A DNA stretch of 63,933 nt, counting the filler, from Choristocarpus tenellus KU-1152 (taxonomy: Eukaryota; Protista; Phaeophyceae): the NCBI GenBank assembly GCA_964200185.2. It is 13 parts of 13 records of this genome, joined end to end, with 100 filler letters (N's around TTAATTAATTAA, not from the genome) between each part and the next. Parts side by side here need not be neighbours in the genome. Positions count along the whole stretch, not along the records: positions 38,121 to 43,225 come from CAXNAD020011857.1; 12 more parts are not named here. One strand, given 5' to 3'. Numbering within the stretch: the stretch's first letter is position 1; the number at the start of each line of letters is the position of its first letter. Below the pieces are notes generated by a model that was not told the DNA's origin, searched no databases, and saw only the letters and a program-made list of their open reading frames with translations. Made by a program: the position numbers and the translations under genes. This document shows positions 36,953-43,358 of the stretch, piece after piece.

Positions 36953-39317
36953 TAACTGAGGAGGAATTAATCTACATATTTCAACGTCAAGACTTGGGAT
37001 TCTACACATTCTTTAACATGCTAGCTAGCATACTTTAAAGTGTGCTGATTGTTGAAACCTGATTTCGCACGAGTTGTGCATTGTTGTGATGTGTCTGATT
37101 TATGGCGAAGAGGATCATAGTGCAATAAAGTACTGATGAATTTGTTCTGGTAGGTCTGATGGCTTGTTTTACTCATTCAAACAATATTCGATGTTAAAGC
37201 ATGTTTGGTTGTACCGTGGTTAACACGTTTAGGGGAAAGTGTGTGTCATAGTTCAACAAGACACCTGTGGGTCCGGTCTGGTGCATCTGAAGGTATGTTT
37301 TACTCGATCAGACTATGGTTGTTGTGAAATGTGTACTGGTACGTCTGGCAGCACATTTTACTCAAGCAGACAACGATTAATGGAAAGTGTGTGGTCATTC
37401 ATTGAGACGCCCAAATGAAGAAATTAATCCTCTGTGAAGAGGGTTGTCACCTTGGCTGAGAAGGGTTTCGAAGGATGGTTTTAACTTTGTATATATTGCA
37501 TCCTGGTGTGTCTTTTATACGTGTTGCAGAGTGAGTAGGATGTCTTATGAGGGGGCAATAGTAGTCAAGTAAAAAGTAATGATCAACACATGCCATGCAA
37601 CTCATAACTTCTTGTCTGAAGAAGAAGAAGCAAGGCAAAGAAGAAACAAAGAAGAAATAAGCTTGAATCCCGTATCTAAGGTAACTAATGTGACGTATAG
37701 TATGCCTGTATGAGTGATGGGTAGTGAATGTGTCTCTGCTTCATATCTCTTATAATGTTCTAACCATGATTAAGCAGTTGCATTATAGCGTCACGCTCCA
37801 GAAGCTTACCTCCTCAGGATGTATAGCTCCAATTCACAAGCTACTCCACAGGATGTATAGAAAATGCTGATGCTCGCGTGAGCCTCTCAGGATACTTCAA
37901 CAGTCGAGAGGAGTCCATCGCCATCGCACATCAGGTTCGTCGAATGACAGCTCAGCAGAACAGGGGTACTTTTCTCAGTCAATATCAGTACAGTAGGTAC
38001 ACCGATTTTGTTCACCCATGNNNNNNNNNNNNNNNNNNNNNNNNNNNNNNNNNNNNNNNNNNNNTTAATTAATTAANNNNNNNNNNNNNNNNNNNNNNNN
38101 NNNNNNNNNNNNNNNNNNNNCTGGTGTAGACCCCCCCCCCCCTCCCAGATACTTTGGGTCTCTCCATGGGATTCCCACAACAACTTTTGTAGTATGACAA
38201 ATTCAGGGAAGGCACAAAAGATTGTGGAGCATAGCCTAAGAGCGATATTGCCGGCTGTTGAGAAGAATATAAAATGTAGTGCTCACATACCAAATGCCAC
38301 CAGCGACAATGGTTGACCATCAGAACTCTCTGCTATAGCACCACCTCACAAATCAGCATATGTATCAACACGCAACTTCTTGCTGCCTCACAAAATTTGA
38401 GGAGTTTTCACCCCGCCGCATCTTATCTTGGAAACATACCGTACAACCCTAACCCTAACCCTATCCCAAAGATTTGAAATGTCCGATCTCCTATTTGGTA
38501 TTTCAATGCCTGCAAAATTCTCTGCAGCCAGCCAGATCATCATACCAGTAATCTCTGAGCATCATTTTGATAGTATATTATTTTCACTGTCCAGCCCCAG
38601 GAAGGAAATACTGTTACCATCCTCAAATGAGAAGAAAATATATATTATTTCAATTTAACACTACATTATCTGTGTGTACATGTTTTGAACTAAGTAGTAA
38701 AATTAATTTATGGATATGTATCTAACTGTACTTGCCTTGGGTTTTGTCTTGGGCGCCGGCCTGGAGTTTATGTTGTGGCCCTGAGAAGCCTTGGTTTCCC
38801 TAGGAGGCGGCAGGCACTATAATTGTCACAATGGGGTGGGGAGAGAGGAAGGGGGATAGTGACTTAGAGACCCATTTCTGAGAGCATGCACTTGAATGAG
38901 AGAGAAGGGAGAAGTCAGTTGGTATCTCATTTCGTTATAAAGTACGACTGTGTCGTGTAAGTTGAGGTTGAGGCTAGATGTTCACTGCTGTCTCACAATT
39001 TCGAGCATCTCTATGTCCTTGGTGATATCTGTCACAATTTTGCAACAGAAGGAGGATTTGACAATGTGAAAACAGATGGAAATGTTCCATGCATGTGTGT
39101 GTGTGCGCGCGCGCGCGTGCGTGTGTTCCTTTGGAAGGAATGCTGTGAAGATCAATATTTCTCGGGTACCTTGTTCTGAGGCTTCAACCACAGCAATAGT
39201 ATTTGAACCATGTATGTTGTGTGCGATAAATGTGATTAGCAAAACAATTTACCCGAGTTCAAACTTGAACTGCACGGGTAATTTGCATTCTCAATGCACT
39301 AGTGTAGATTTACTCAC

Positions 39318-40654
39318 AAACTTTTTCTTCAGAACAGTTACGTCTGGGTAGTCCCTGTTGTCCCTAGTGAAGTCAGTGAATCGTGCCTCAATCAGAGCTG
39401 AAAGTTGGCACTCCATTTTCTTGGACTTCAACCCGTATGGTCCATCAAATGGTACCTTGTTGCACATCCAACAAGTGTAGTGATGGTTACACACTGAATG
39501 CCTTCAACAGGAATGGTACAAATAGCCCAAGTAGCACTACCTCATCTCCAATGAGGAGGAAAAATGGAGTTGAACAATGCTGAGCCTGTGCTCTGTAAAA
39601 CAAATAGCAGTAAAAAGCTCGCTACTATAGACATCGTGGTGGAGAGTTCACCCCATACAATAGAAGGGCAAAGTTTGATTCATGATACTGAATCCTTGTC
39701 TGGTCATGGCATTTGACAGAACCAGCTCTGTGAAACCCTGCAATAAGAAGAACAATAAGAATAATGTTGTGTATCAAATCTTGTTGTGAAGGTAGTTATA
39801 GGTACGTCACAATCTACATCCACGTTGTTGATGTATGTACTAGATTTGAATTTGAAGGGGATGCTAATCGATCCCAGATTTTGTTCCATGCTGTGCAGCA
39901 CATCTGAAATCGAGTGCAAGATGATGTTGTATTTGTCAGTTGACTCCGACCAAGCAAATTTGGGTGTCATTGTCTACAAGTCCATCACCTTCTGTGCAAA
40001 GCGTGCAAAGCAATAGCTCAATTGAAGCTCAATAAAACAAGAAAAGTATGACCCAAGAGCAGGAAAGATGTGTCTGCACCTAGTTACGCATACCTTGTCT
40101 CTCTTCCTCCTCCCACCCTCAGTCACCATGGAATAGGGTGGAACAAAGCGGATTTCAGGGTGGGCCTGGAGGGAAGAAGTTTATTGGAGTTGGTGAGGGA
40201 TTGCTGAGGTGTACTTGTTGATCTTGAATTCGTATCAATTTCGCTGTTAATAGCATGTTGATAGCATGCTAATAGCATAAAGGGTTTACTCATTTCGTCC
40301 ATATTCCAACCACAGAGTATGTTCTACGGTGGGATCTTATTGGGATAATCGTTCATGCTTCAAATGCTATTTGAGTCTACTACACAACTAAAAATATGGT
40401 AGAAAGACCTTGCCATTGTATTTATTTCCACCAAAATCTACACTAGTGTGAGCCTGTCTCCAGATACTAGTCGTACCCATCCAGTAGTGCAGGTTATGGT
40501 TAGAAGCAAACGACTACTACACCCACCTGGGCAAAAAGTCTGGCGTCCTTGGCAGTAATGTTGCCATTCTGAATGGCAAGAACGTTGGTCTTCACAAGGT
40601 CACGGTCTGATTTCTTTGCCACCGATGGCTTGGAGACATCCCATGTAGAAATCA
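39318..40654 (-). CDS. Multi-exon hypothetical gene (candidate exons 40527-40654, 40094-40165, 39973 downwards, 39318-39397)
   Basis: Canonical AG/GT boundaries. The first three exons splice in compatible phase: ISTWDVSKP...ARLFAQ|AHPEIRFVPP...KRDK|TMTPKFAWSES... Confidence 0.45.
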
Positions 40655-41052
40655 CTGAGAAAACATTATAGCAACCAATACATGATGGCAAGTGTAGGAG
40701 AACAACAATATGGGCAAATCACTCCTCAATTCCTTCAACGTATCTTCTCTGAATGAGCATGCCGTGATATTCGTCATTGTAGATAATGGGGATCGGCTTG
40801 AACTACCCGTTTCTTGCCCTGCGCAATAGTTTGAAAAACAGAAAGTTTGTAACTGCTGGTTGCCTTCCACTTTGAAGTTGGAGAAAAAATAAAGTTCCTC
40901 TATTTCATTCGATTTAAAAGTACATTCCACAGCTTACCCGCCCCGGCCCCCTCCTCATCCTTGGTAACTAATGCACCATAGATGTGAGCCTCCGGTGGAA
41001 GGTCATAGGTGCTTGTCCGTACCTAAGAAATGAGAGTGTGAGGGAATGAACA

Positions 41053-41290
41053 GAGTCAAAGTATCTTAGAGGGTAGAGCCGTGTCCGTTGGGGGTCAAAA
41101 TCCAAAGTTGTATCATGTTTGTTAGGAAGTGTCAATATCCTTGTTCCGGACACACCATTTCATAATGTATACACTTTACCTACTCCGAAACATTTTGGAG
41201 TAGGAAAATGTCATAAAAAGAGACCATGGGAAGCCAAGCCCCAAATGGACAAACAGGGGAAAACTTGTACCCTCTATGATACTTTCACTC
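41053..41290 (-). mobile_element. MITE family C (internally shortened)
   Basis: GAGTCAAAGTATCTTAGAGGGTA...TACCCTCTATGATACTTTCACTC. Confidence 0.85.
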
Positions 41291-42108
41291 GGAAGCATAC
41301 AAGTAGAGTATCAGAGGCGATGGCTTCAAGCTCTTAAAAATATCGGAACAATGTTCAAGTCAAGCTATTAGCTCCATTCCTTGCTCCTTATGACCTAAGA
41401 CATGGTCCTTTCGAGATATAATACCCTCTTGCCATTCCGAATCACTTGATATGCTGGGCTACCCAGGATTTACACCAGTACAACGCAAGGTTTCCATATC
41501 GTCCCCCTATACAAGGGATACAACCGTCGACAGGCACGGCATGGCAAACGATTAAATTCCCTTACCTTTCCTACAACATCCTTGACCATGGTGGCCTTCT
41601 TTGCAGAAGACATGCTCGTCGTCCTGGATACCATAGAGCGGAGAGTTTCGAAGACCTACAACAGGAGAGATATATGGTGTGGGTCTAACGGTGCCACTCA
41701 CCAAGTTTTTGCACATACTTACAAAAGTACTATGTGTGATAGACCGCACCGACCTGTAAGCATGGAAGTATGATGAAGAGAAGCGCTTGGGTCAGCTAAC
41801 CCTGTACTAATTTTCGCGCGTTTCCCTTATTGTTCCTGTGACGTTGGCCCTGTGCAATACACTTCGTCGATATATCGTTTCTTTGAGATCTGAGACAAGA
41901 TGTTTATGCGACTATGTTACTCCTATCTAACGAGCCTACAAGTGCCTCTATCCCAAGTTTCGTTGAGCAGGGTCTTCCGCCTTCGTAAGAAATTCTTTGG
42001 CTGTAAGCCAATCTAACGGTTGACGGTTACATGTAACGCCTGCAATTGCGGCACAGGAAACCAATTCATTGGAGAATATAGATTAACATTTTTTACTTTT
42101 GACGAGTG

Positions 42109-43139
42109 TTACTTCCTTAGGGATTTTTTCAGACATGTGAATAGTTCTCATCGATTTTCCCGTCGTGGTACACATCTCTAAAATGTCACAGGATATAATA
42201 ATATATACGAATGTATTAGTAATTAGAAGAAAGGATAGAGGTTTATTAGTATATTATTAGTGTTAATCACATTTGTGATATATTTTACTTCTTAGGGTTT
42301 ATGCTGACATATGTATATTTTTCATTCATTGGTTTTCCCCCTGAGACATCTGTAAAATGTCATAGACATAATATTACTTTGTACATAATATGAATATCAA
42401 GGCAAGTTCATGCTTCAAACAGCCCTTTTCTAAGATAAAAGTTAAATTCAAGAAAGAAGTTGTTGCTATAAAGTTTGGTAATTTAGACATAGAGAATCAA
42501 AAAGGTAAATATATATAGGCAGAAAAGATTGGAGCGGCTTTATCAAAAGAGATGATCTAATCACGATTGATACCCGTAATGACTATGAAGTTAAGGTATG
42601 CACTTTTGAAGGTGCAGTTGATCCTAACATTTCTAGTTTTAGAGAACTTCCTAGGTGCATAAAAGATAATATACGTTTCTTTAACGGCAAGAAAGTATCT
42701 ATGTTTTGTACGGTCCGTTTATGGGTTGTGACATACGTGAATATATAAAGTAAATAGGTTTGATCTTATTGAGTACATTAATTTATTTAAATCTTTTGAG
42801 AAATTCTTTTTAACAAGTCACTACTAGTTAGGGTTTTTTAGTTGGTTGTACAACTTAAAAGCAAAATGGACATTTATGTTTTATTCTGCATCAATATCTG
42901 AGATGCCCAAATTAAATCGTTACTTTTATTATAGATAGGCTCTATTCCGACATGTGTATATTTTTTATTCAATGGTTTTGCCCCTTACACATCTGTAAAA
43001 TGTCAGAGGGCACAATAATAATAATATTGTAGGTTTAGTTGGCCGTACTGTATGACGAAGAAAGACTGTTGATGGTGTATATAGTTTTCATTGGTTTCCC
43101 CCCTGACACATCTGCAAAATGTCCGAGGGCATAATAATA
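42109..43139 (-). repeat. Four same-orientation copies of a short repeat (family E; about 65-110 bp here, at 42109-42203, 42267-42373, 42919-43026, 43075-43139) with unrelated spacers
   Basis: Consensus on +: TTACTTCTTAGGG..CTGACATGTG..ATAGTTTTCATTGGTTTTCCCCTGACACATCTGTAAAATGTCAGAGGGCATAATAATA. Confidence 0.8.
42390..42713 (+). pseudogene. trhO: Fragment of bacterial tRNA uridine(34) hydroxylase TrhO/YceA (rhodanese domain), Rickettsiales-like, frameshifted and truncated
   Basis: Manual translation MNIKASSCFKQPFSKIKVKFKKEVVAIKFGNLDIENQKGKYI / (2-nt frameshift near 42515) / KDWSGFIKRDDLITIDTRNDYEVKVCTFEGAVDPNISSFRELPRCIKDNIRFFNGKKVSMFCT. Carries PFxKxKVxxKKExV, IDTRNDYE and MFCT(GGIRCEK) family motifs; AT-rich and intronless. 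Confidence 0.85.
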
Positions 43140-43358
43140 TATGGAAAGGATTAGTTAAATCCAGGCTATGCCAAATTGTTTCGGTGACTACGCAAGTGGC
43201 ATTGTCTCGACGTCTCATGCGCTTCNNNNNNNNNNNNNNNNNNNNNNNNNNNNNNNNNNNNNNNNNNNNTTAATTAATTAANNNNNNNNNNNNNNNNNNN
43301 NNNNNNNNNNNNNNNNNNNNNNNNNATTGAAGCAGTTATGCTTCATGCTAGGGGGGCA

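Follow-up and report, generated by a model that had tools for sequence, protein, structure and literature searches.

Why does a stretch of DNA that encodes part of a bacterial-type TrhO protein lie among the repeats and spliced exons of a eukaryotic genome? TrhO is the oxygen-dependent tRNA uridine(34) hydroxylase, and DNA transfers from Rickettsiales to the nucleus are well documented. The original prediction for this locus, made within the window (the whole stretch of 63,933 nucleotides), was that a decayed trhO fragment at about 42375-42713 derives from a Megaira-like Rickettsiales symbiont and was inserted into nuclear DNA. We examined the fragment and the piece of the window that holds it (38121-43225). 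We propose, with a probability of roughly 85%, that a short stretch of genomic DNA from a Megaira-group Rickettsiaceae symbiont was inserted into nuclear DNA here and that the fragment is now a neutral relic of it. Moreover, the same data allow us to weigh this reading against a secondary nuclear copy, a faulty assembly, and a eukaryotic or viral source.

Extent and decay of the trhO fragment

Translation and profile searches place the limits of trhO-like similarity at 42387-42712 on the plus strand, slightly inside the predicted interval. These 326 nt encode residues ~84-191 of a TrhO/UPF0176 protein in two reading frames. Piece 1 (42387-42515, plus strand, in the frame of 42390) spans the last part of the UPF0176_N domain together with the linker, corresponds to residues 84-126 of the TrhO protein of an uncultured Rickettsiaceae MAG (L001), and closes at a TAG at 42516-42518. 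Piece 2 (~42512-42712, plus strand, in the frame of 42392) holds the first half of the rhodanese domain and stops at MFCT.

The TrhO/YceA motifs on which the prediction was built are borne out by family and structure searches. In NCBIfam, piece 1 matches PRK00142.1-1 (positions 67-108, E = 3.8e-6) and PRK01415.1 (E = 3.9e-6), and piece 2 matches PRK01415.1 (positions 115-179, E = 1.4e-19) and PRK00142.1-1 (E = 8.4e-19). The bit scores of these TrhO matches (27-71) are far under the whole-protein cut-offs of 170-280 because the fragment represents a partial protein. Piece 2 also matches two PDB entries: 4f67, a solved UPF0176 protein from Legionella (E = 1.2e-13), and 9j5o, a tRNA uridine(34) hydroxylase (E = 1.9e-10). 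In Pfam, piece 1 matches UPF0176_N over positions 69-92 of 92 alone (E = 0.056). The fragment is homologous to the TrhO family and lacks a complete UPF0176_N domain, the catalytic cysteine loop, and an uninterrupted frame.

The base composition of the trhO stretch also sets it apart. Its GC content is 32% vs 43% in 38121-42019, in keeping with its description as AT-rich, and it equals that of the equivalent part of trhO in L001. The codon make-up is likewise that of the bacterial gene. The AT-rich block gave no match to a plasmid collection.

How far has the fragment decayed? A TA run at 42510-42517 (plus strand) carries two extra bases, which appear in the DNA alignment A3 as a 2-column gap in both L001 and the trhO gene of Candidatus Megaira venefica (L007); correspondingly, blastn aligned 295 nt of the fragment to 293 nt of L001. 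The 2-nt frameshift that had been predicted is thus present relative to two Rickettsiaceae genes. The abrupt 3' end was also read correctly. DNA and protein similarity both stop at 42712, at MFCT, where relatives go on with GGIRCEK, part of the CTGGIRCEK active-site loop that contains the catalytic cysteine, and in alignment A3 the bases 3' of 42712 do not align to the GGIRCEK codons of L001 or L007.

No further donor sequence was recognised in this piece of the window. A tblastn search with the full-length L001 and L007 proteins found no N-terminal part of trhO anywhere in 38121-43225, and tblastn, tblastx, and blastn searches with L001, L007, and the 8.8-kb L093 sequence found no other trhO part and no trhO-neighbour gene in the same interval. 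An NCBIfam scan of 10 stop-free segments from 41894-42253 and 42691-42960 revealed no further bacterial remnant.

Decay is also visible in the residues that the fragment does encode. All 10 columns that are invariant in the alignment of piece 2 with its best matches (A1) are kept. Among the 33 columns invariant in the Rickettsiaceae clade, 5 are changed (I>V, V>L, G>C, W>C, and A>S), vs at most 2, with a mean of 0.2, when real clade members were left out one at a time. The end branch of the fragment is 0.66-0.76 changes per column, vs a median of 0.18-0.19. The frameshift, the truncation at both ends, and the 5 of 33 changed clade-invariant residues together lead us to conclude that this is pseudogene decay. 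The fragment is non-functional and has no TrhO function.

Affinity of the fragment with Rickettsiaceae

Which lineage did the fragment come from? We searched piece 2 with HMMER against 1.84 billion representative proteins and obtained 834 matches; among the best 150 of these 834, none is more than 57% identical to it. In a scan of one genome per bacterial or archaeal species (GTDB), for which piece 2 aligned with its best matches (A1) served as the query, L001 ranks first by E-value among the matches listed (62% identity, E = 5e-24) and Ca. Megaira venefica, whose record is titled "Megaera", ranks seventh (61% identity). These are the two highest identities among the matches listed in that scan; the others reach at most 57% and belong mostly to Rhodobacterales, Acinetobacter, and Pseudomonas.

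Comparison with the full proteins extends this affinity to both pieces. The full TrhO proteins of L001 and L007 are colinear with 42387-42712, which equals L001 residues 84-191. In tblastn, the L001 protein is 72% identical to piece 1 over 43 aa and 63% identical to piece 2 over 67 aa (combined E = 1.7e-36), and the L007 protein is 58% identical to piece 1. At the nucleotide level, L001 and the fragment share 72% identity over 295 nt. A word search with the L001 protein yielded 120 close relatives, of which the few named ones are Rickettsiaceae or a Rickettsiales bacterium; taxon labels here come from the GTDB loci and a few MAG names of the form "Rickettsiaceae bacterium". The nearest relatives, P0154 and P0155, are metagenomic kin of L001 and are 66-69% identical to the fragment. 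Over 108 aligned columns, identity to the Rickettsiaceae clade is 46-68% (66-68% to the L001/P0154 group and ~58% to the TrhO of Ca. Megaira venefica), vs at most 48% to anything outside it.

Maximum-likelihood trees agree with the identities. In a tree of 152 rows, the smallest well-supported sets that contain the fragment hold 49 rows (SH-aLRT 95) and 56 rows (SH-aLRT 97), and the sole labelled members of these sets are the two Rickettsiaceae genomes. In a tree of 65 rows, 39 of them labelled outgroups, SH-aLRT is 95 and 100 for the corresponding branches, and the fragment falls in an L001-like subgroup (support 82) and not with Ca. Megaira venefica. All of these supports are SH-aLRT values from quick searches, and the trees are without labelled eukaryotic TrhO/TSTD2 homologues. 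The fragment nests in the Rickettsiaceae clade, on a long branch, and as judged from its sequence its origin is Rickettsiaceae. The predicted Rickettsiales, Megaira-like source is accordingly upheld, with up to 68% identity inside the clade vs at most 48% outside and SH-aLRT values of 95-100. Since the best identity is just 68%, either the donor lineage is unsampled or the insert is old.

A giant virus or phage was considered as the source and rejected, given that relatives on viral contigs are at most 48% identical to the fragment.

The relatives also provide some context for trhO itself. The nearest protein cluster, P0154, has 13 members, and P0275, from this cluster, is encoded on a metagenome scaffold of 81.5 kb with a record name starting in SOLA22-1, the scaffold of L093. 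The nearest Rickettsiaceae contigs (L093 and L094/L001) carry two Band_7 genes and a gene with trypsin and PDZ domains upstream of trhO, and trhO also overlaps the beginning of a small gene that matches Trans_reg_C weakly.

Host sequence and junctions around the fragment

The fragment shares its piece of the window with a eukaryotic gene. We searched candidate exons singly against Pfam and read splice sites and phase from the sequence. Two exons on the minus strand match the CFAP77 family, PF14825. The first (40938-41022; acceptor AG at 41024-41023, donor GT at 40937-40936) matches positions 19-44 of the model with E = 4e-4 in segment 40903-41022, and the second (40527-40654; acceptor AG at 40656-40655, donor GT at 40526-40525) matches positions 43-89 in segment 40503-40718 with 26.5-27 bits, vs a gathering score of 24. 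The first exon ends in phase 1, with one extra base, and the second begins with the two bases that complete the codon, so that a canonical GT-AG intron of 283 nt joins them in phase. The candidate spliced exons of the original prediction are therefore supported by both Pfam and splice sites. CFAP77 is a protein of the cilium or flagellum, which makes the host a flagellated eukaryote.

Other segments near these exons are less clear. We rejected 40722-40802 as an additional exon between the two because it has no Pfam match and the flanking exons splice in phase with contiguous model positions. A stop-free segment on the minus strand at 41473-41655, with an ATG at 41634, is a candidate first exon of CFAP77 and has no Pfam match; if this exon is real, the trhO fragment and a host exon are in one and the same short-read contig. 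Several exon-like, stop-free segments of 44-89 aa lie downstream of the CFAP77 exons on the minus strand (39294-39973); they have no significant Pfam match and could be a poorly conserved C-terminal part of CFAP77 or belong to another gene. No Rfam family and no tRNA was found in 38121-43225.

Between CFAP77 and the fragment lies a MITE-like element of ~238 nt (41053-41290, unstranded), bounded by terminal inverted repeats of 23 nt (41053-41075 and 41268-41290) that are 91% complementary. It adjoins the 5' side of the first Pfam-supported CFAP77 exon, and 38140-38167 matches part of its terminus as well (pair I1). In the original assembly, the fragment occupies an intergenic position 5' of CFAP77.

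The fragment itself is surrounded by four copies of an AT-rich repeat of ~110 nt (family D1), all on the plus strand, which were found by repeat search and alignment A2. Copy 1 is at 42095-42225, and copy 2, at 42270-42386, runs up to the left edge of the fragment without a gap. On the other side, copy 3 (42912-43040) is 85% identical to copy 2 over a 73-nt core and is followed by copy 4 (43040-43165), which belongs to a very high-copy family. The conserved core of the repeat (CACATCTGTAAAATGTC) holds a short palindrome, and the copies besides 43040-43165 have diverged.

An AT-rich, unstranded spacer of 199 nt (42713-42911) separates the fragment from copy 3. Its GC content is ~27% (0.274 over 42713-42935), and it is single-copy, with a depth of ~24-28 in X1, one of the two short-read runs described below. 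Stop-free segments of at least 20 aa that lie at least partly inside the spacer gave no NCBIfam match, and the spacer showed no tblastx or blastn similarity to the 8.8 kb around trhO in a close Rickettsiaceae contig. It may be filler or further, unrecognisable donor DNA.

Is the fragment physically joined to this host sequence outside the original assembly? We used two runs, X1 and X2, which derive from two samples within a single study; one of them may be the sample that the window was assembled from, so their support is not fully independent. A third run, raw reads of another organism from that study, placed no reads on the piece and has no bearing on the junctions. The junction evidence consists of short-read de Bruijn contigs, and depths are contig word depths, a coarse measure. 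In X1, a contig of 1756 nt covers 41261-43016 at a depth of 24.1 with 0 differences; in X2, a contig of 1615 nt covers 41261-42875 at a depth of 6.09, also with 0 differences. Both contigs join the right terminal repeat of the MITE, ~760 nt of sequence with ~45% GC, repeat copies 1 and 2, and the whole trhO fragment, and the X1 contig also extends into repeat copy 3.

The depth of the fragment is that of single-copy host DNA, as the prediction of a nuclear insertion implied. Contigs of the CFAP77 region have depths of 19-22 in X1 and ~5-11 in X2, vs 24.1 and 6.09 for the contigs with the fragment, and 42396-42908 has single-copy depth at a likeness of at least 95%. Continuity of the fragment with host repeats and a host-like single-copy depth are thus both seen in X1 and X2. 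The predicted embedding of the fragment in host DNA holds in the contigs of both samples as far as the host repeats and the 45% GC sequence are concerned. Contigs break at the MITE (41076-41261), and the link from the fragment to the Pfam-supported CFAP77 exons across it comes from the original assembly.

The repeats behave very differently. In X1, repeat copies 1 and 2 have depths of ~93 (~4x single copy) and ~94, and 42054-42395 as a whole is at ~93 in X1 and ~22-27 in X2. The summed depth of copy 3 is 16483 in X1, with ~16500 in X1 and ~3200 in X2 over 42909-43079. Copy 4 reaches 337006 in X1, vs ~24 for single-copy sequence, and 43080-43225 has ~337000 in X1 and ~94500 in X2. Finally, the MITE has a summed depth of 437000-779000 in X1, vs ~20 for single-copy sequence, and 130000-220000 in X2; contigs break there, with many joints to other copies. 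Therefore, the flanking repeats are host sequence and not bacterial, and the host MITE of the original prediction is confirmed by depth. With its CFAP77 exons and high-copy MITE-like repeats, the flank of the fragment is eukaryotic nuclear DNA.

Several further features of the region were noted. A telomere-like interstitial run of 2-3 CCCTAA units lies in a repeated region at 38445-38470, depth climbs to 1e3-2.5e4 towards 38121, and loose ends are numerous at 38445 and 38463. The short-read contigs of both runs break at a compound (TG)n(CG)n microsatellite (39085-39132). Contigs of both runs also show one-base length variants at 38131, 42124, and 43098, in homopolymer or repeat contexts; because summed depths are high there, these variants probably derive from other copies of the repeats.

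Proposed origin and meaning of the fragment

Could the fragment have reached its present site by another route? The assembly might join a trhO stretch from a live Rickettsiaceae symbiont in the culture to host sequence. Bacteria of the Megaira group turn up often in SRA data from algae and ciliates (PMC10132079), the piece measures just 5.1 kb, and a single study supplied both of the supporting runs. However, a live symbiont would have an intact trhO, and this one is frameshifted and cut at both ends. Moreover, contigs from two samples carry the fragment together with host repeats and 45% GC sequence, with 0 differences and at host single-copy depth, and the summed depths of the flanking repeats, 1e4-1e5, could not arise from a bacterial genome of ~1.3 Mb. 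The neighbours of trhO in Rickettsiaceae contigs likewise have no similar sequence in the piece. We therefore consider a chimera or contamination very unlikely. A somewhat less remote idea, though still an unlikely one, is that host repeats or repair moved a partial copy of an older nuclear trhO, itself derived from Rickettsiaceae, to this site, so that the fragment would not be a direct symbiont insertion. The position of the fragment between direct copies of a host repeat that are 85% alike (42270-42386 and 42912-43040) could hint at repeat-mediated capture, and the nearest bacterium is just 68% identical. Yet 38121-43225 holds no visible intron, other gene part, or second copy, nor any sign of a parent nuclear gene; the depth of 42396-42908 is single-copy; and the GC content (32%) and codon make-up still match those of the bacterial gene.

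A source outside bacteria has the least in its favor. Eukaryotes have TrhO-related rhodanese proteins, and trhO-like genes occur on some viral contigs, so the fragment might be a pseudogene of a vertically inherited TrhO/TSTD2-type gene or a virus-borne copy. Its placement inside Rickettsiaceae (SH-aLRT 95-100) argues otherwise, in trees without labelled eukaryotic homologues, so that the case rests on the identity gap. Nothing among the best 150 of the 834 matches in the 1.84 billion representative proteins is more than 57% identical to piece 2, relatives on viral contigs are at most 48% identical, and piece 1 shares a long, specific stretch with L001 (72% over 43 aa). We regard such an origin as extremely improbable. 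A decayed insertion of Megaira-group DNA, and not contamination, is supported by the frameshift, the truncations, the 5 of 33 changed residues, and the two-sample contigs with host sequence, as had been predicted.

How might such an insertion have arisen? In the reading that we favor, the donor would be an intracellular bacterium of the Megaira-group Rickettsiaceae, from which a piece of DNA entered the nuclear genome of a flagellated eukaryotic host. The insert would comprise at least 326 nt from the middle of trhO, and up to ~550 nt if the AT-rich spacer came along. The likeliest route, which we infer, is end-joining repair of a double-strand break, as for NUMTs and Wolbachia nuclear inserts, and the landing site would have been the AT-rich, intergenic cluster of host repeats 5' of CFAP77. 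The inserted piece was presumably never a whole gene, as it would have arrived without the N-terminal two thirds of UPF0176_N, the catalytic cysteine loop, and all that lies beyond. Neutral drift may then have added the +2 frameshift, by slippage in the TA run, and the replacements at otherwise invariant residues.

Two wider readings go beyond this single insertion. Further Megaira-group DNA could be scattered through the host nuclear genome, with the fragment as one part of it, and would then record a lasting or repeated association with a marine lineage of Rickettsiaceae that, because the best identity is just 68%, would not yet have been sequenced. We offer this only tentatively and think it more doubtful than probable. 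If it is true, orthologous presence or absence in sister species could date the symbiosis. In a bolder variant, the insert, by virtue of its place in the 5' intergenic region, may have been co-opted into the regulatory region of CFAP77.

What does a dead gene fragment tell us? On its own, 326 nt of a decayed housekeeping gene have no functional consequence. The fragment is valuable as a genomic fossil, a mark left in the host lineage by a Rickettsiaceae symbiosis that is past or still present. As a nuclear insertion, it would be direct genomic evidence that the flagellated host or its ancestor harboured a Megaira-type Rickettsiaceae bacterium and that DNA of the symbiont entered the nuclear genome of the germline. 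Relics of this kind can expose hidden or lost symbioses and help to date them. They also flag genomes whose bacterial-looking sequence should not be filtered out as contamination.

Megaira-group symbionts are known from green and brown algae and from ciliates, and one of their genomes was obtained from data of the brown alga Nemacystus decipiens; MegNdeciBESST, which is associated with a brown alga, is among the published Megaira genomes (PMC10132079). A transporter gene like that of Ca. M. venefica has been described in a ciliate in a Mesodinium preprint. Gene transfer from Ca. Phycorickettsia to eustigmatophyte algae is reported as well (PMC6092422) and likewise links a rickettsialean endosymbiont lineage with gene transfer in an algal host; the case described here is a dead fragment in nuclear DNA. 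The fragment is colinear with residues ~84-191 of the Rickettsiaceae TrhO (YceA/UPF0176; ~260-265 aa; the L001, L007, and P0154 group). Unlike these proteins, it is without a start, most of the N-terminal domain, the catalytic cysteine loop, and the C-terminal part, and it carries a +2 frameshift.

The closest precedent comes from Volvox carteri, whose nuclear genome contains a rickettsial insert of ~9 kb with stretches that resemble four genes (Kawafune et al. 2015, PMC4324946). In both cases, DNA of a Rickettsiaceae endosymbiont lies in the nuclear genome of a flagellated eukaryote and is read as a trace of a past or present symbiosis. However, unlike the ~9-kb Volvox insert, the sequence described here is a single gene fragment of 326 nt, frameshifted, cut at both ends, and set amid host repeats. 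Wolbachia-to-host transfers, NUMTs, and NUPTs also place DNA of intracellular genomes in the nucleus, where it is mostly non-functional, decays neutrally, and often occupies repeat-rich sites. The present case differs from these in its donor, a Megaira-group Rickettsiaceae, and in its size, which is at the very small end. The fragment belongs to a known kind of event, symbiont-to-nucleus transfer, and this instance of it is new.
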